Shown piece by piece: positions 12,357 to 42,957 of a stretch of 64,000 nucleotides of DNA; within the stretch, counting starts at the first letter, position 1, and the number at the start of each line of letters is the position of its first letter. The stretch comes from Blastocystis sp. Blastoise (lineage: Eukaryota > Protista > Bigyra: Opalinata), in contig JBBPEB010000004.1 in assembly GCA_039096225.1 (NCBI GenBank), forward strand, positions 310,001 through 374,000. The letters are read 5' to 3'. The position numbers and the translations under genes were made by a program. The notes under the pieces are model-generated. The model did not search any database and had not been told where the DNA came from. It saw only the letters and a list, made by a program, of their open reading frames with translations.

Positions 12357-14936
12357 ATGTCGACTAGTAGTGATTCTGAATATGATTCTGAAGACTATTC
12401 TGATGAATCTGAAACTTTTGATATGAATAATTTCTCTGGTTTAAGTGAAGAACAAAAGGTATGAGTCCATAGATATCATTCAAGTTCGAATAACTTATCT
12501 TTGTAGCCATTATTTATATTTTCTTTCTGTAGAAACTGTTACAAGCAAAAGTGTCGAGTCTACAAAAACAATTCTCAACATTTATAGAGAATCAAACAAA
12601 TCAAAAGGTCTTTTACTGTTAATAATATCATTATTTGTAAATTATCTATAGATTTTGGACGTTCAGGCAGCTATTCCAGGTATCACTGTTCGTCAGGCAG
12701 AAATAGCTATTCGTGGTTGTGGTGATAATGAAGTATACATTGTTTTTTTATATGTTATTCCTATGATTACAATTTTTATTTATCATTTTATGGATATAGA
12801 ATTAATATTTGTATATATATAGTTGTCTGCTATTCAACGATATCAATTAGAAAATGAGTTTCATGATAATGTAAATGCTATGGCTGATGGATCCCTTGAA
12901 GAAAATTATGAACTTTTAAAAGTATATTATTATTATTTTTTATTTTATAAATATTGTTTTTATTAATAGTTGTTTTTTTTTTATAAATTTATATTTATTT
13001 TTATAAATTTATATTTTTTTTATATTATATAATATTATATTATATAGAAACATGATTTGAAAACTGAGATTCAAGAGATGTTTGCTGAAGTAGATGCTGA
13101 ACATACTGATGATGAAGATGAAGGGTATGGAATAGATGTTAAAGAAACAAAAAAACATAAATATGAACGAGCTACACGATCCACTAAAAGGAGAAAAGAG
13201 TATATATATATAATTATTTCTTAAAATAAGAAATATTCAATATATTGTATGATATATATATAATAATTTTTTATAATAAGAAACATTCAATATATGTATA
13301 TCTATGATTATTTTCAATAGAAATAATGATAAAAGACATAGTCGTTGTCAACGATTACTCCTCAATGATGCACTAGCACAAGTATATACTATTATTATTT
13401 TATTCTATTACTATTTTTATTATTATATTATTATTATTATATTATATTTTATACTATTTTTTTATTATATTAATTAGAATCTATTTATACAATTATATAT
13501 ATATTACCTATACAATCTATATATCATCAAATTGTTGCTAAACATAATATTCATTTTAGTTAGCTCAATTACAACAAAAGAAACAGAAGAAAACATCTCC
13601 AACAACAAATTCTGTATCTTCTTCTGAAAACTCATCTGAAAATAATTCCGTGTCTAAGAATAATGAAATAGTTATCGATTCCACTCACATTTCAGAAGAA
13701 AATAATATATCTGTAAATACAAATATTGATGAATTATCACCTGTATCATCCTCATCTTCATCTTCATCTTCTTCTATTCCTCCTGCTCTTATTAGTATTT
13801 CTCAACCTATATCTCAAATTGATAAAGATAATTCTTTATCTAATGTTCATGACAATATAGAAAGAAAAGAGAATAATATGAATAATAAGGATACTATTAA
13901 TTCTAATAATAATGATAATTCTATAAATATAAATAATAACGATAAATTATCCATATCAAAAGATCAATCAGAATATGTAAATCAATCAATACAATCAGAT
14001 ATATCATTATCTCCTTCTATTTCTCAACCAAAAGAACAAACTCCTATTAAACGATATAATACACGTTCTTCTTCAAAACAACTCTCAATCTCTTCTTTTT
14101 TATCCTCAAATGCAAATAGTATATATATATATATAATTGATTTTGTTTAATTATTATTTTTAATTAATTTTTTTTTTAATAATCCTATTATTCTCTCTAT
14201 ATATATATTTATATATATTTATATTTATTCTCTTCATTTATATATATGATATAACAATATGAATATAACATTTATTGCATAATCTAAAAATATTATATAT
14301 AGTAGCAATAGAATCCAAAGATCAAAATGATTCTTCTAATGAAAAAGAAGATACTTCAAAGAATACTGATTCAATTAATAATACAATAAATGAAAATATA
14401 AATAAACAAATAGAAACACAATCACAATCAATAGATATGAATATAGATCATTTGAATATACAAACAGCTACTTCTGATTATACTGAGTCTGTAAAGAATG
14501 AAGTTGAAATTAAAGATGAAAAGTCTATAGGGAATGAGATTATAAATAATAAAGAAGAAGAAATATTGATTGAAGATACAAAGGATACTAAAAAGAATAA
14601 AAATGACACTAAAATAAAACAATCAAAATCTACAAAACAAAATAAAAATAAAAAAATTAATTATGATGAAGATGAATATATAAGTGAAAATAATGATGAT
14701 AAACAAGATGATGATGAAGATAATTATACAGAAGAAGATTCAAAAATAAAACATAAACGATCTTCTTCTACTAGATCTGGAATAAAATCTATAAAAACAT
14801 GTTCAAATCCTATTTATGTTTCTCCACCTAAAGAACCAATTAGTGTTCTAGTGATTAAACAAGATAAAAATACTATTCCTGAGGTTAGCGAATCAGATCT
14901 TCAGAATCTTGGATGGAGTACTGCAAGAATTAAAGC

Positions 14937-14978
<42 letters not shown>

Positions 14979-15328
14979 TATAGTCTTCTATTATTTGTTT
15001 TTATATTTATTATTAAAATATTTGATATATATAATGTAATATAAACTATATAATATATTTATTAAAATATTTGATATATATATAATAGAATATAAACTAT
15101 ATAATATATATATATATAGTTATTATAATCGTGAACATAATCCCAATGCCTATTATTATCGTTTTAATGATCCAGGTGTTCCTCAAGCTACAGGTCAATG
15201 GAATGATAATGAAAAGAAACTATTTATGCAATTAATTAAGAAAGGAGTAGATTATCAAGTATATATGATTATAGTATTATTATTATTATATATAATTATA
15301 TTATTATTATATATAATTATATTATTAT

Positions 15329-15372
<44 letters not shown>

Positions 15373-16581
15373 GGGTATATTTAGTACTCATATTCCTGGA
15401 CGTGTTGGTTATCAATGTTCAAATTTTTATAGGTATATATATCATATATTATTAGTTTTATTATAATTATATATATTTAATTATTATTTATTATTTTTAA
15501 TTTCTATAAATATATATATATAATAGATTATTAGTAAAAGATGGTGAAATTGTGGATCCTAATTATGTATTTGATGAAAAAGGAAAATTAAAATTTCAAT
15601 TTAGAGATAAAGATGGAAATTGTAAATAAATAATATATTTATGCTTTTATTTATATATATTTATATACAAATAAATATTAATATTAATATTTATATATAT
15701 ATGTATATTTATATATATAGGTACGTTACATAGATCGCGTAAAACAACAAGTATTGAAGTAAAAACAACGGATGGAAAAACAATTAAACGAAAGCCAACT
15801 TCTAAACCTGTATATTTATATATTTATAGTATTGATTATATTTATATTTATAATTATATATTATATTTATAAATTCGTTTATTCTTATAATAAATCTATA
15901 TTATATATAGCGTCAAAGAGTCCGTTATGATTATAATCCTAAAGGAATGGATGATGATTATGATGATGATAAGAATAACAGTGATGAAGATGATGAAGAA
16001 GAAGAAGAAGAAGAAAAACAACAAAAACCAAAATCTGTTCTTCCTGTATACTATATATATTATAATTTTTATTATAATTATCTTTATTATAATTATCTTT
16101 TTTATTATATTTATTATTATATAGGGTTTTATTGATCCTGTAACAATGGAAGAAATTGAACAGCCTGCTATTTCACCTTATGGACATGTTATGGGGTATA
16201 TATATATATTTATATATATATGATAATCATATATATATATTTATATAATAATCATAATAATAATCATTAGCATAATAATCAAATATATATAATAATCATA
16301 ATAATAATCATTAGCATAATAATCAAATATATATAATAATCATAATAATAACATTTATATAGATATTATTCTTGGATGAAAATATTAAATCAAAATCCTA
16401 AAAATACCTGTCCATATACAAAACAAGTATATATAAAAAATAATAAACATAATAATAATTATTTATATAGAAATTAACAAGACGTATGTTAGTAAAATTA
16501 GATGAAGATAATATAGAAGAATATCGTAATAAAATATTAAATTATGATATTAATGCATGCCCATTTATAAATAAAGAATAA
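12357..16581 (+). CDS. Myb/SANT-domain protein with C-terminal U-box/SP-RING-like domain (multi-exon)
   Basis: GQWNDNEKKLFMQLI..WGIFSTHIPGRVGYQCSNFYR (Myb) and FIDPVTMEEIEQPAISPYGHVM..CPYTKQKLT (U-box-like), separated by low-complexity linkers. Confidence 0.8.
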
Positions 16582-19852: not shown

Positions 19853-20171
19853 ATATTATTCACAACAATGATATAAAACTCAATTATACATTTTCATTTT
19901 TAAATTGATAACGTGAGGAGTCAATTTTTTTTACGAAATAAAAAAATAAAACCGTGGGGATTTATAAGCAAAAAGAACATTAATTTTAATTGGATGAATT
20001 TATTAATGTAAATGAACATTTTCATTAAAAAAAAAAACTTTTCCAGAAAGACTTTTTTGGGGAGGAAGTATCTCTAAAACATAGTTTTCATAAGTCCTTT
20101 TTGACTCTAAAGGTATAGAGAAAAGTGTTTCTCATAGTATTTCTTTGATTCTCTTTTTATTTGATGAGTTT

Positions 20172-20586
20172 CACTAGTAGGCATTTTGTTTTTTAGTAAA
20201 AAAATCTATCTAATGGGTAACCAAAACCTTATCTAAAAAATGGGCTATTTTCTTATCTAACGACAAAAAATCTTCTCTAACCAAAAGCCAGGAAGTTATC
20301 TAACACGTCTGACCCAGCTGGCATCTTTTTTTTTTAAGAGCAGTTTTTGGTGTTTTTCTTTTCTAACACAAGGCAAATATATGTCTATTCACTAGTAGGC
20401 ATTTTGTTTTTAGTAAAAAAATCTATCTATTGGGTAACAAAACCTTATCTAAAAAATGAGCCATTTTTCTTCTCTAACCATATACCAGGAAGTTATCTAA
20501 CACGTCTGACACAGCTGGCATCTTTTTTTTTTAAGAGCAGTTTTTGGTGTTTTTCTTTTCTAACACAAGGCAAATATATGTCTATT
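20172..20586 (+). repeat. Tandem duplication (~200-218 bp) of the CACTA left terminus including the TIR
   Basis: 20172-20389 and 20390-20586 both start CACTAGTAGGCATTTTGTTTTT and end AAGGCAAATATATGTCTATT. Confidence 0.92.
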
Positions 20587-22089
20587 TGTATTTTATCTGC
20601 TCTAAAGGTATCTATATTTTTCTCTAATACACATTTTAAACACATTATCATGTATTTTTAAGATAGAATTTGGGTGCTATTTGTTGGATAAAACCTGTCT
20701 TATTTATTTATTTAATCGTTGTGTGAATGATAATTAAAATTATATTAACAAAAGACAATAAATAATAATATAATAATTAAAACAATAAGAAAAATAAGAA
20801 AAATAAGAAAAATAATAATTATTTTTGTTTGTTTTAACTAAGTGGGAACCATTTTGATGACTATACATATAAAAATAATAGAAATAATAATAATATAGAT
20901 AATAAATTAATATATACCTTGTAATGAAACTTCTAAAGCGACTCCATGAAGAAAAGCCGACACTATAAAAATATATTGAATAAAAAATAATATAATATAG
21001 CAATATACCTTCTCAATCCAAATAGTGTGGACCAGGTAAGACCTCAGAGAACACCCATTATCTTTAGAAAAAAAAAATAGTTAATTTCAAAAAATATTAA
21101 TATAATTAAATACCTTTAGAACCATGAAGTTGTCGACTAGGGAGACCTCCTACAACATCTGAACCTATAGAAGATAATATTAATAAAAAAACTACAACAA
21201 TGGAAAAAAATATACCTTTTATAGCACCGGATTTCGGATCACCTAAACCACACAACTCATGAGTTAACTTTAAAATATGAAGAATAATCAGGACCTATTT
21301 GAAGCTATTTCGACGGACCAGTAAGCCTATATAATATAAAATAGCTAAAGTATATTGTATACATTTTAAAAACTATATAATATAGTTGTAAATCAATTAA
21401 AAAATAAAAATAAATATGTAATTTTTTAGAATTTATTTTAAAAATACATACATGGCCCTAAAAATACAGAAAATCTTTTTTTTTCTATAATAAAAGTCTC
21501 TATAAATTTCTTTATTTCCAGGGGTTATCAAATCTCTAAAATTCTCCTTTTTTCTACTAAAACGTCTATTTGAATGCTAAATTGAGTTATAAATGTATTT
21601 TATATGTATTAAGCTAGATTACTTCATTACAACATGTTTCTAGACTTAAAAGAACAAAAAATTGTTATTTTTAACAGAATGTAATTTCAATTTAAAATAT
21701 TTGTGAGTAATATATATATAATAGTATTTGATTCATAATATAAATATCATAGAGAATAAAAATATATATTTGACATAGTTGTTTATAACGTCATTATTCA
21801 CATTTTACGAACATTTTTATTATAATATTTTTTATTTTAATGGATTGTTGATATTATAAGTAAGTGAATGAATTGAGAAGGTTTGTAAGTTGCTATCAAC
21901 ATAAAATAACAAAATCTAATAAAAAAATAAACAGCATTAATACCTATTCCATTTTATTTTATTCGAAAAGAATTCTTTACAATAATCTCATTCTATAATA
22001 TTTACAAAACAAAATGAATAATATATAATTAAATATAACATAATAGAAGACATATATAAAAGTTAATAGACAATAAAAATATATATATG

Positions 22090-27960
<5,871 letters not shown>

Positions 27961-28195
27961 AATTGAAATAAGTTCAATAGCTATTCTTACATATAATTCT
28001 AATCATAAAACAAGTTGTATCTCATATTCTAAACATATATATATATATATATATATATATCAATGAATAGATATAGATATAGAAACTAATATTCTTATAG
28101 TTTTTGTATATATACTAATAAACTAAAATATAATTATAATTAAACGTATAATAATAAAGATTATAATATATAATAATATATAAACATATATATAC

Positions 28196-28903
28196 TTGAT
28201 TGAGTTCCACATGTTCTAGAAGCAAAGAATATAGATATAGAATAGGTGATTCCAGGAATAAGACCTAATTTATCTGCATAATTCGTTATATTAATATGAG
28301 AACCAACTGGAGTATTATAACTATATAAATAATAATAATAATATATATAATATAAATACCCTCCATAATCTAAGAATAAATGTTTATTAATAAAAACCCA
28401 TAATCCATTATTCGTTTCAAAATCTATAAATTGATCTGTTCTATTCTCATATCTATATATATAATAATAATATTATATAAATATAAAATAATAATATACA
28501 AGAAGAATAGATTTATTTTCATAGTAAATTAATATTTCTTACCAATATATTCTTCTATTGAACTTAATGCATATCCTCCTTTTACATCTGTTAAAGGAAA
28601 ATATGTAGGACTAGAAGATATAAAAAATTATAGAATATATATATATATATAAATATATATATATATAAATATACGAGAAATAGCAACAAAAATTCGAATA
28701 TTATTATCAGCATAATCATTCACTTTATCACATACTGTTTCTACTCTATCTTCTTTTGAATATAAATTTGAATATATATATCTATATTTTATATAAAAAT
28801 AATAAATATAAAAATATATACTTTGGATAATTTGAAGGTTGTTTTGTAATAAAATTATCTGTATAATGAATATTATAATCACGAATACCAACTCATTTCT
28901 CAT
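28196..28903 (-). pseudogene. Captured fibro-slime (PA14-like, PsiA family) domain fragment
   Basis: Exons read VGIRDY..., YFPLTD, QFIDFETNNGLWVFINKHLFLDYGG, ADKLGLIPGITYSISIFFASR. There is an in-frame TGA at 28893-28895 and another stop near 28530. Confidence 0.7.
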
Positions 28904-30212
28904 CTATATATATAATGCATATATTCTATATACAAATATACAAATAAATAAATTCTTATATTAATAATATAATTAAATAGATAAAAATAAATAATTAAAT
29001 ATATATAAATAAACATATATATATACAAACTATTTTACAACTGATATCGTATTTGGTATTTGAAAATATCAGAGAAACCACAAGATTCAAGAATGGAGTA
29101 AGAAATAACTTTTCTATATAATATATAAATTGAAAATATATATAAAATATGAATAGGGTAAATAAAAATCAAATGAATAATTTTGATAGGAAAAGAGAAA
29201 AAAGAGAAATGTGCCAATGCAATATAAAAATAAATAGATACATCTATATACGCTCTATATTGTCTCGACCTGTTGTTTGGAAGAAGTACTGACGAGAATA
29301 ACTGAGAAACCTAAGTGAATTAAAAAAGAAATGTAATAAAATACCTTATAATAAATAAACCAACAAGTCCATGTTATGTACCTTTCTAAAACTAGTCAAG
29401 GAGAATGTCTGAAAGGAAGAGGATATCCAGAATCGAAAACCTATAAGAATGATGTAAAACACTATGATAAATTTTATAAATAAATACTAACACATTATGA
29501 ACACTTCTTAGAAACATCTATAATAACTGTAATCAGTTCTAATTTGTTCATATAAACACAAACTTAAAAAAATATATATGAATTCATAATTCATTTCTAA
29601 TTTTTCAAATTTTATCCTTTCTTAAAAAACCAGAAGTCTGTCTAAATTTTAAAAGTATGTCTAAAAAAAAGGCGAGAACGCTTTGGTGCGTTTTCGTTAT
29701 CTAACGTGACCCAAAAATATATCTAACGCGAAAAACGTGCCTACTAGTGTTTTGATTATATTTTCATAGCCAATACGTTTGAATGAATGTATTCAAACAA
29801 TTAAAAAACAAAATATATATATATATATTTCTAATAGTAATTAATAAAACTCAAAAAAATTAAAAAATAAATAAATAATGGAAAAAAATAAAAAATAAAT
29901 AGATTGATATGAGAAATAGGTATCAATAGAAACTAGTATGTGAAAAATGAAAAAGAAATGACTTTAAGAAATTAAGAAAACATGACATAAAAGAAAATAA
30001 ACACAAAAGGAGAAAACCCTCAAGTTAAAAAAAAAATAATACAAATAGTGTTTATATATTAACTAGTATAAAAATAAATATATATAATAAATAGGAATAT
30101 GAATATAAATACATTTATAATAAGTAAATAACAATATAGTTAAAGAAAAAAAAATTTACAAAAAAGCAATATCAAATAGATTTATAGGATAAATTTATAA
30201 TAAAAAAATCAT

Positions 30213-34851
<4,639 letters not shown>

Positions 34852-35536
34852 ATTAATTTTTCTTTTTCAACAAGATGAGAAGGTTAGATATACGCACACA
34901 AGCTTCTTAAAAAGAAAAAACAAACAACAGATAGAACAGTTTACCAAGAAATCTGTTTGGAGAAAAAAAAGAGAAAAACAAATGATATTTCTGAGAATCT
35001 TTGTTTCTTTACGAGAAAAATGTGAATTTCCCATTCTTTTTTGAATATTCATGAAAAAATGGATATCCCTAGGAACTATCGAGGATTAATGGTTGAGGAA
35101 CACCAACTCTTTATTTGTAATAGAAATAAAAATACAATTTTTGTATTTAAGTTTTTTAAATAATCATGATTCTTATGTAAAAGTAGGGATGAGCAATGAT
35201 TGGGAAAATTATGACTTTAGTCATGAATAAATTGGAATTATGACTATCGACTAGACAAAAAATCAAGGGAAAAGTCATGAACATAAATGAAATTTTAGTC
35301 GACTAAAAATCACGACAATCATGACTTTTCACTGATTATTGACAAAAATATATCTAACAAGTAATACTCACAAAAATGAACACTCAAATCATTGGTGGAG
35401 TGTGTGATGTATCGTCTACAAGCGGTTGCAGTAGTAACAGTGACAGTCCAGAAATTGAAGTAAATGCCGATGCTGAAAAAGTATGTCTCATAAAATAACT
35501 GTAACATATTTTTTATAGAGTGCTAGCCAACAACAA

Positions 35537-41690
<6,154 letters not shown>

Positions 41691-42957
41691 AAAAAATATT
41701 TATAAAACTCGTTTGATTCATTTAGTGACTTAGATATGATTATATATATGATATAAAGAAGGTATTCTTTTGATTTTTCTATGTGTCTTTTCGAAATGTG
41801 AAAATTGTAAAACGATTACAAATAAAATACAGCTCTATAAGATAATTTTCCACTTTGTTATGTTTTTGTTAGCTTGCATTCTTAAATAGCAAACGTAACT
41901 AATAAATAATGTGATATAATTATATAATTCATTGTTTTTTTAGAAATTTATCACTTTTCTATGATTTATTTAGACAATATATTGAAAAGTATGCAGTAAA
42001 TATGTGCTAGTTATCAAAATATAGAGAGAAAACGAATAATCATATATTAGTCATGACTAAAAGACTATGATTGTGACTTTCATAAATAAAAATCGACTAA
42101 AAGTCATTTTTTATGATTAACCGTGAATAACAATCATAAGTCGTGATTTTAGTCATTGCTCATCCCTATGTAAAAGGAATAGAATCGTTTATTATTCTTA
42201 GTAGTTTTTTAATTGTGATTATGATCTTATTCAAATTGTAGTTTACATGAATAGTTTTATAAAGAATAGATAATGAAAGTGTATAAAAAGGTAATTGATG
42301 GAATTGCAATTCGGATTCATTTTTAAAAGGAAATAATTGGTGGTTGTTAAATAAAAAAAATACTTCTTCAAATGATCTAGATGATTCTTGAAACTGCTAA
42401 TAAGCAAAAAGAATGTGAGCATTCTTTATAGATATTATATGTGTTCTAAAATATATATATTTATTGAAATAGTTATATATAGTATGTGATGATTATATAT
42501 ATATATATTAATTTATTAAGAAAATGTAATTCACTATTTTAAAAAATTGTTTTGATATGATTGTTGTATATGTAGAAGAAAGTTTACTAATACGATGAAT
42601 ACAAAAATGATTTTAAATATTTTTTTGTATTTTGTAAATTGAAAAAAAAATAAAAGCAAAATTCTATAATATATATTATATTAATGTTGTTTGTATATAG
42701 GATTTCTAATAAAAAACGAAATTTCTTAAAAAATGATTTTAAACAAAACACTTATTAATGAATATTCACAAAGAATGTAAACAACAATTAAAACAATAAC
42801 GAGAAAGGTTTTTTCTTAAAAAAAAAAATGAAATATCGAAACTATTTGATAATAAGTAATGCAAAAGCAACTTTTAGCAATGAAAAATAATAAGTAAGAA
42901 AGAGATATTAGAATAGTTTATCTAATGAACATAGAACGGTTTGAATAGATACGAAAA

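Follow-up and report, generated by a model that had tools for sequence, protein, structure and literature searches.

A probable non-autonomous CACTA/CMC transposon family carrying a captured host gene fragment in Blastocystis sp. 'Blastoise'

Introduction

Blastocystis sp. 'Blastoise' is a stramenopile gut protist isolated from a tortoise. The subject of this study is a transposable element of 9,578 bp, a complete copy, which lies at positions 20172-29749 of a stretch of 64,000 nucleotides of its genome. This stretch, referred to throughout as the window, corresponds to contig C13, positions 310001-374000, and has a G+C content of ~21%. The assembly comprises 33.3 Mb in 34 contigs, which are designated by C-numbers; loci extracted from them are designated by L-numbers. 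It is very probable that the element belongs to a middle-aged, non-autonomous CACTA/CMC family, termed family A, which is mobilised in trans and carries a fragment of a host gene that was captured once. The transposable elements of Blastocystis have been tallied only as a percentage of the genome (5.6-7.5%), with the families left undescribed (PMC10690189). CACTA-type elements in Blastocystis are not described among the ten best-matching full-text papers on Blastocystis and CACTA or transposons.

Termini and Target Site Duplication

Both ends of the element carry a perfect 12-bp terminal inverted repeat (TIR), CACTAGTAGGCA, which is of the CACTA/CACTG type. The window contains three matches to this sequence, at 20172 (+), 20390 (+) and 29738-29749 (-), as opposed to 0.06 expected. 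Across the genome there are 47 matches, compared with four for the reversed control, and these are mostly arranged as +/- pairs with a spacing of 6.6-9.6 kb. A variant of the repeat, CACTGGTAGGCA, is also common in the genome in the form of pairs. The element is bordered on either side by the 3-bp target site duplication (TSD) TTT. Perfect TSDs of varied sequence are present in 12 of the 13 complete elements examined (11 of the 13 being of this family), the triplets including TAT, ATA, TTA, ATT, CAA, ACT and AGA as well as others. At this base composition, the probability of a chance match is estimated here at ~0.035 for each element.

The termini are rich in the short motif TCTAA, which occurs 11 times in 20172-20607 and five times at the far end. 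This corresponds to ~25 copies per kb in the termini versus 2.2 per kb in the interior, an ~11-fold difference in density, and the copies at both ends are in one orientation, on the + strand. The TIRs, the TSD and the subterminal repeats had all been recognised in a first-pass annotation made from the letters of the window alone, and all are confirmed.

The left end of the element is double. The outer terminus, R1, is followed in tandem by an inner terminus, R2, each with an intact TIR (Table 1). A 217-bp spacing of two TIRs is also found in seven other copies, on C5, C8, C16, C21, C23, C29 and C31. R1 matches the single terminus found in L001, L002, L005 and L009 at 97-98% identity, and in complete elements the TSD always stands beside the outer terminus. 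It was also observed that the terminus is of the outer type wherever it is single, the inner type being found only in the double-terminus form. The arrangement suggests that the tandem left terminus is a composite of two sub-lineages.

Family A and Its Older Relatives

A genome search places family A at at least 17 loci, along with four loci of older relatives, termed A', that are 70-84% identical to it. By BLAST, ten of 12 extracted TIR-bounded loci share the whole interior with the window element at 91-98% identity. It had been envisaged that the interior might be single-copy host DNA enclosed by two independent insertions or solo termini, and solo TIR matches do exist in the genome (e.g., C16:351650, C24:516860 and C28:439991). 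This explanation, whose probability is now negligible, is refuted by the recurrence of the unit at its 17 or more loci; at at least ten loci the whole interior lies between the same ends, each time with its own 3-bp TSD. The window element is one mobile unit, and two independent insertions are excluded.

The usual length of a family A copy is 6.7-7.3 kb. The substitution distance among copies has a median of 4.5%, with the copy nearest to that of the window at 2.6%, which indicates that family A is not of very recent origin. Between A and A' the divergence is mosaic, at 21-25% for the arms as against 7-13% for the core, which suggests that recombination has taken place between elements.

The window copy is longer than the common form as it contains an extra segment of 2.3 kb, which is shared with the copies at C5:702909, C8:1380378 and C14:183860. 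Within it, positions 24041-24940 resemble a single locus outside the family, C28:177182-178150 (~80% identity), where the tested frame is interrupted by stops and an open reading frame (ORF) of the DUF4218 type is found at a distance of 4 kb. Positions 25869-26233 match, at 69%, an old element-like remnant inside the blocks of the gene family described below (family C), and the match runs unbroken across the boundary at 26060. These features hint that the long form may be the original one, from which the common short form would have arisen by a deletion between AT-rich tracts. The stretch 25869-26233 was also considered as the trace of a second donor gene; this was rejected, as the family-C match lies in non-coding DNA and looks like an old transposon remnant.

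The Captured Fragment and Its Donor Genes

Near its right end the element carries exons and introns of a gene with a Fibro_Slime domain, and this fragment makes up ~9% of the element. The ORF 28164-28472 (-) matches the Fibro_Slime model TIGR02148 with an E-value of 1.9e-8, in two stretches that are split by an in-frame AT-rich intron. The name of this model refers to Fibrobacter and slime moulds, and the presence and expansion of such genes in Blastocystis is notable in its own right. Protein searches of the genome located the same exons at ~10 loci outside family A. Nine of ten exon-bearing loci lie 20-111 kb from contig ends, and six were extracted and confirmed as gene copies (L021-L026). 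They represent one repeated block of 10 to >20 kb, termed family C, with ~93% identity to each other. The block is additionally present at L029-L034, an example being C31:1325705-1345499, and encodes a large multi-exon Fibro_Slime-domain protein.

In family C the exons sit in a longer run of open frames, and these are open in the six copies. The ratio of non-synonymous to synonymous differences (pN/pS) of the gene ORFs is 0.22 and 0.07, versus ~1 in control frames. For the exons of the captured segment, pN/pS is 0.05 in the gene copies as opposed to 1.27 in the transposon copies, and the fragment exons contain frame-breaking gaps in five transposon copies. Judged by these ratios, the family-C exons are functional host genes under purifying selection, and the fragment is evolving neutrally in the transposon copies. 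The residues encoded by the fragment of the window copy are still identical to those of five of the six gene copies.

The direction of transfer could in principle be the reverse, with a segment of 0.8-1.2 kb having passed from the transposon into the family-C blocks, or with family C itself being a large mobile element. The blocks are indeed repeated at least six to nine times with a size of 10 to >20 kb and ~93% identity, and they hold the small old remnant that resembles the transposon core. However, the segment is flanked in family C on both sides by the longer run of open, selected exons, whereas in the transposon the homology ends within introns on both sides. The neutral exons and the frame-breaking gaps of the transposon copies, together with the strongly subtelomeric position of the family-C copies, also speak against this direction, which is very unlikely. 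Capture of the gene fragment by the transposon is the preferred direction.

The homology to the donor gene ends inside AT-rich introns at both breakpoints. Block positions 14498-15742 are complete only in L004 among the copies of family A. Most copies have lost ~420 bp of the donor segment, including that of the window, in which 28147-28651 and 28653-28976 are retained, and two copies have lost the other side. The fragment has the same left breakpoint in at least 12 copies at different loci and has thus been carried along in later transpositions. It was not found in the A' copies L013-L016. A diverged relative, L027 (C28:310.7-317.5 kb, within the locus C28:307600-317500), has an A'-type end, CACTATCAGGTC, at L027:3094 and also carries the Fibro_Slime fragment with the left breakpoint shared with family A. 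In a tree, all transposon-borne fragments cluster apart from the six gene copies with a support of 87/83. Taken together, the shared breakpoint and the tree point to a single capture, which would predate the radiation of family A. The first-pass annotation had proposed capture at the DNA level with introns kept; this holds for the Fibro_Slime fragment, with the capture placed in an ancestor and not in this copy.

L027 also has a PA14/GLEYA exon (L027:6087-6383; PF07691, 24.6 bits versus a cut-off of 24), which is absent from the window copy, and so the cargo varies within the lineage. It was noted in addition that the L027 element directly adjoins a 764-aa transposase ORF of the DUF4218 type (L027:1-2292).

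Table 1. Features of the element in the window, with two TIR-bounded intervals elsewhere in the genome
Feature	Position	Strand	Remarks
Left TSD copy, TTT	20169-20171		Matching triplets in 12 of 13 complete elements
Outer left terminus R1, 218 bp; TIR 20172-20183; six TCTAA	20172-20389	+	TSD adjoins R1
Inner left terminus R2, in tandem; TIR 20390-20401; TCTAA repeats	20390-20586	+	~87% identical to R1
Left arm, family-specific, no recognisable coding content	20587-22663		~96-98% identical to sister copies (substitutions), 79% to A'
Acidic orphan ORF	22935-23471	-	Main exon of NCBI 'hypothetical proteins' in sister copies
Extra 2.3-kb segment between (ATA)n/(TA)n tracts	23764-26059		In four copies only; absent from the common 6.7-7.3-kb form
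Core common to all family copies and A'	26060-28146	-	Conserved islands; degraded 171-aa frame
Captured Fibro_Slime-domain gene fragment, exons and introns	28147-28976	-	90-98% identical to family-C gene copies L021-L026
Right arm and right terminus; five TCTAA in last 200 bp; TIR 29738-29749	28977-29749
Right TSD copy, TTT	29750-29752
Exact-TIR intervals enclosing 846-aa ORFs, same superfamily	C8:2015452-2031433 (16 kb); C18:5391-34242 (28.8 kb)

The Interior Outside the Fragment

The sole long ORF of the interior is 22935-23747 (-), which encodes an acidic protein from the methionine at 23471. NCBI has annotated this protein seven times in sister copies, with a length of 194-272 aa; the models have two to four exons and map to 23471-22341 only. 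The median pairwise ratio of non-synonymous to synonymous divergence (dN/dS) of the acidic ORF is 0.37-0.40, versus 0.70-0.79 in two control frames. There is no Pfam match to the protein and no relatives were found outside the Blastoise genome. The ratios provide modest evidence that the ORF may be under selective constraint. A shorter ORF in the left arm, 21109-21294, likewise has no Pfam match. Of the sampled words of the element, 14% are present in a polyA gut metatranscriptome run and 23% in an RNA run of the organism's own study, which hints that the element is transcribed.

An alternative explanation is that family A itself encodes a small accessory protein (the acidic ORF 23471-22935 plus downstream exons), comparable to the second protein of En/Spm, with the DDE transposase supplied from elsewhere. 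In addition to the NCBI models and the depressed dN/dS, the ORF is open in most copies and its region is the best conserved between A and A' (7-9% distance versus 21-25% in the arms). This strong conservation nonetheless extends over AT-rich non-coding stretches of the core and so may reflect recombination rather than selection. Furthermore, the protein lacks a domain or relatives, its C-terminal exons vary between gene models and the dN/dS ratio rests on few substitutions, so that this explanation is regarded as unlikely.

Three conserved islands in the core, at 26145-26216, 26821-26913 and 27094-27174, are ~98% conserved in all 18 copies. Their pN/pS values are alike in all three frames, without frame-specific selection. 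The core also contains a 171-aa frame, which is degraded in family A (~27400-28000) and open in the A' copies L013-L016 (e.g., L014:1929-2441), where its identity is 98-100%, in contrast to 80-90% for the remainder of these copies. L014 lacks an AT-rich stretch of ~70 bp in this frame (in-frame in L013), which the other three A' copies keep. No relatives of the 171-aa frame were found by a word search or an Atlas search, and its single-sequence fold is of low confidence, with a predicted local distance difference test score (pLDDT) of 38.

The first-pass annotation had described minus-strand exons by the dozen, derived from two or more unrelated genes, and the interior could accordingly be a chimera of several host fragments, assembled through exon shuffling and repeated capture. 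In favour of this, one captured fragment is indeed present, the interior holds ~20 GC-richer islands, the cargo varies in the lineage as seen in the extra exon of L027, and 24041-24940 has its one homologue outside the family. Nevertheless, DNA and protein searches of the organism's own genome, in which exons were queried individually and which recovered the multi-copy Fibro_Slime genes under purifying selection as parents of the fragment, returned no parental locus for any other part of the window element. The GC-richer islands besides the fragment have no relatives outside the family, and the orphan ORFs have none in 5.8 billion proteins or in the Atlas. The stops in the C28 homologue and the behaviour of the conserved islands also count against a chimera, as does the fact that most of the interior is common to the older A' relatives, which lack the Fibro_Slime fragment. 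A chimeric interior is thus quite improbable. Only 28147-28976 has been traced to a gene, and the NCBI models cover two to four exons; since the rest of the interior consists of orphan frames and islands without gene relatives or frame-specific selection, the description of dozens of exons from two genes is not supported. As regards cargo from several genes, the window copy yielded no second parent, and the extra PA14 exon belongs to the L027 relative. The remaining interior is family-specific orphan sequence that was probably inherited with the element.

Candidate Sources of the Transposase

No Pfam transposase match is present in the largest open frames of the interior, and the sole match that Pfam and NCBIfam gave for its ORFs was that to Fibro_Slime. 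Genome-wide six-frame scans with PF02992 and PF13960 gave matches elsewhere and none in any copy of family A, and a tblastn search of all family A copies with the transposase of family B, introduced below, found nothing. The absence of a recognisable transposase, as originally noted, is thereby upheld: the window element has TIRs and a TSD and no transposase gene, as is characteristic of a non-autonomous element.

Candidates for the mobilising enzyme are found among other elements of the genome. Elsewhere, four other ORFs score above the PF02992 cut-off. Family B (8.93 kb; loci L008 and L012) has the same 12-bp TIR, with copies that are 99.8% identical and flanked by the TSDs AGA and ATT. It contains an ORF of 1,092 codons, annotated as a protein of 1,102 aa. 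Language-model features group this protein with Transposase_21/DUF4218 clusters (score 0.95). DUF4218 is also the sole Pfam match, a weak one (E 0.004-0.013), which is obtained in three paralogues of the protein at the expected position. A profile search of 1.8 billion proteins recovered distant relatives, likewise with weak DUF4218 matches. The protein is homologous (E 1e-16 to 1e-10) to ~25 long ORFs in the genome, most of which coincide with DUF4218 matches, and several of these lie between CACTGGTAGGCA pairs. An AlphaFold model (pLDDT 51.5) displays a beta-beta-beta-alpha-beta core with a near-invariant aspartate after strands 1 and 4, and RAG1 and Transib are its best, though weak, PDB matches. 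Several lines of evidence, from sequence and from the predicted fold, therefore point to the family-B protein as a putative CMC-type DDE transposase.

Pairs of CACTGGTAGGCA that are 6.5-33 kb apart enclose ORFs of 831-895 aa with weak DUF4218 matches, as at C2:77035..93157, C8:2194228..2215446 and C8:599420..613276. The intervals bounded by CACTGGTAGGCA look like a population of large, putatively autonomous CMC elements. At the other extreme, inverted CACTATTAGGCA pairs lie 85 bp apart at C8:600098/600183, C15:526190/526275, C15:562109/562194, C15:681252/681337 and C16:1331656/1331741, and these are likely to be miniature elements of ~97 bp of the same superfamily. Comparison of elements with the same TIR had been suggested at the outset; the Fibro_Slime fragment recurs in at least 12 copies, and family B shares with family A the TIR only.

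Proposed Mechanism and Its Weaknesses

Under the current proposal, family A would be a cut-and-paste family whose transposase is supplied in trans by elements with an identical TIR. The source of the enzyme could be family B, through its 1,102-aa protein, or the 16-29-kb exact-TIR intervals with 846-aa ORFs. The one-orientation TCTAA arrays would act as putative subterminal binding sites. The gene fragment may have been copied once into the family ancestor, by repair or by template switching at AT-rich intron tracts, then amplified along with the element and afterwards trimmed by internal deletions. The tandem left terminus could result from insertion beside a terminal remnant or from a duplication, with transposition making use of the outer end.

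A number of observations weigh against this account. As families A and B have nothing in common beyond the 12-bp TIR, the mobilisation of family A in trans can only be inferred. The family-B protein falls below every Pfam gathering threshold, and the best PDB fold matches of its model, RAG1 and Transib, are weak (E 0.015 at the low pLDDT given above). No two copies of family A are identical, and thus they give no sign of recent activity of the family itself. Some constraint on the acidic ORF means that the element may be not entirely non-coding. Further, older captures may lie in the ~90% of the interior that has no traced origin. The TIGR02148 match of the fragment scores 34.6 bits, under the curated cut-off of 45, and a genome-wide TIGR02148 scan reported nothing at an E-value of 0.001; the scan is uninformative because each exon alone scores low.

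A more elaborate scheme combines several of these elements into a split CACTA system, in which an acidic accessory protein, under selection and encoded by the family itself, would work with a DDE transposase borrowed from unrelated elements that have only the 12-bp end in common with it. The lineage would repeatedly capture exons of subtelomeric surface proteins (Fibro_Slime in family A, PA14 in L027) and so shuffle a variable surface repertoire. This scheme is considered doubtful, with a low probability. With regard to the single captured fragment, the donor is a subtelomeric, multi-copy Fibro_Slime family under purifying selection, and the capture therefore touches a gene class that may matter for host interaction.

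Comparison with Known Systems

The maize dSpm/I elements, defective forms of En/Spm within the CACTA/CMC group, have the CACTA terminal motif, a 3-bp TSD and arrays of short subterminal repeats, and receive their transposase in trans. Family A, compared with them by description only, resembles them in the CACTA motif, the 3-bp TSD and the subterminal arrays. A dSpm element derives from its autonomous partner by internal deletion, whereas between family A and the candidate partners examined the 12-bp TIR is all that is shared. The single orientation of the TCTAA repeats at both ends is a further difference from dSpm. Pack-MULEs, known from rice and other plants, are members of another superfamily, in which the TIRs are long and the TSDs measure 9-10 bp, and they typically hold several fragments each. 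The likeness to them lies in the capture of fragments with introns at the DNA level, followed by amplification and neutral decay; chimeric transcripts are possible in Pack-MULEs.

A close parallel in structure is provided by Pack-CACTA1/2 of Arabidopsis thaliana (Catoni et al. 2019, PMC6379663), which have CACTA termini, a 3-bp TSD, no transposase, gene fragments and a small multi-copy family structure. The Arabidopsis elements are mobilised in trans by autonomous CACTA elements (PMC6379663), while for family A this is inferred from the shared TIR. Catoni et al. described terminal remnants of ~264 bp and closely spaced direct insertions, which they linked to DNA acquisition (PMC6379663), and the tandem 218-bp left terminus found here recalls these remnants. 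The perfect TIR is 12 bp in family A, in comparison with a conserved terminus of 26 bp in Arabidopsis (PMC6379663), and the host is a stramenopile gut protist as opposed to a plant. The proportion of gene-derived DNA also differs, with ~9% in the window element and the rest made up of orphan family sequence with its own ORF. The window element holds a fragment of a chromosomal gene with parents elsewhere in the genome (28147-28976 versus L021-L026), while an interior of mainly captured host DNA, often chimeric in Pack elements, is not seen, ~9% being traceable. It works like a Pack-CACTA and largely qualifies as one, falling short in this last respect. The earlier designation as a Pack-CACTA element with gene cargo is thus retained as to its CACTA/CMC kind, its TIR- and TSD-bounded structure and its intron-retaining fragment, with the cargo reduced from the bulk of the element to a small part of it.

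The animal Pack-TIRs (Tan et al. 2021, PMC8277862) are similar in that a host fragment is taken up at internal breakpoints by a non-autonomous TIR element, which is later multiplied by transposition (multicopy Pack-TIRs). As the mechanism, Tan et al. propose that short similarity guides either template switching or the filling of gaps (PMC8277862). In family A the host differs and the breakpoints lie in AT-rich, low-complexity intron, precluding a precise measurement of microhomology. Capture of genes had been put forward as a phenomenon known mainly in plants; as capture by TIR elements is also known in animals (PMC8277862), this overstates the novelty of the present case. The results extend Pack-type gene capture, documented in plants (PMC6379663) and animals (PMC8277862), to a stramenopile protist, in which at least one family copied part of a host gene and spread the copies to a dozen loci.

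Genome Annotation and Neighbouring Sequence

The large, AT-rich genome of the tortoise isolate holds a diverse CACTA/CMC population: putatively autonomous 9-kb elements, TIR-pair intervals of up to ~29 kb, 7-kb non-autonomous elements and likely miniatures of ~97 bp. For annotation purposes, the 'hypothetical proteins' of ~200 aa in the family A copies are transposon-borne. A ciliate code, in which TAA and TAG are sense codons, was tried as the cause of the stops in the element and rejected, as it inflates ORFs everywhere. With the standard genetic code, the genes that flank the element, among them those for an aminotransferase and a WD40 protein, give normal reading frames, and the standard code therefore applies. 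A hAT transposon also lies near the element, at 35184-42168 of the window. Its gene is broken up by long (ATT)n tracts, and the ORF 40638-41687 (+) contains the hAT C-terminal dimerisation domain PF05699 (E 1.9e-12).

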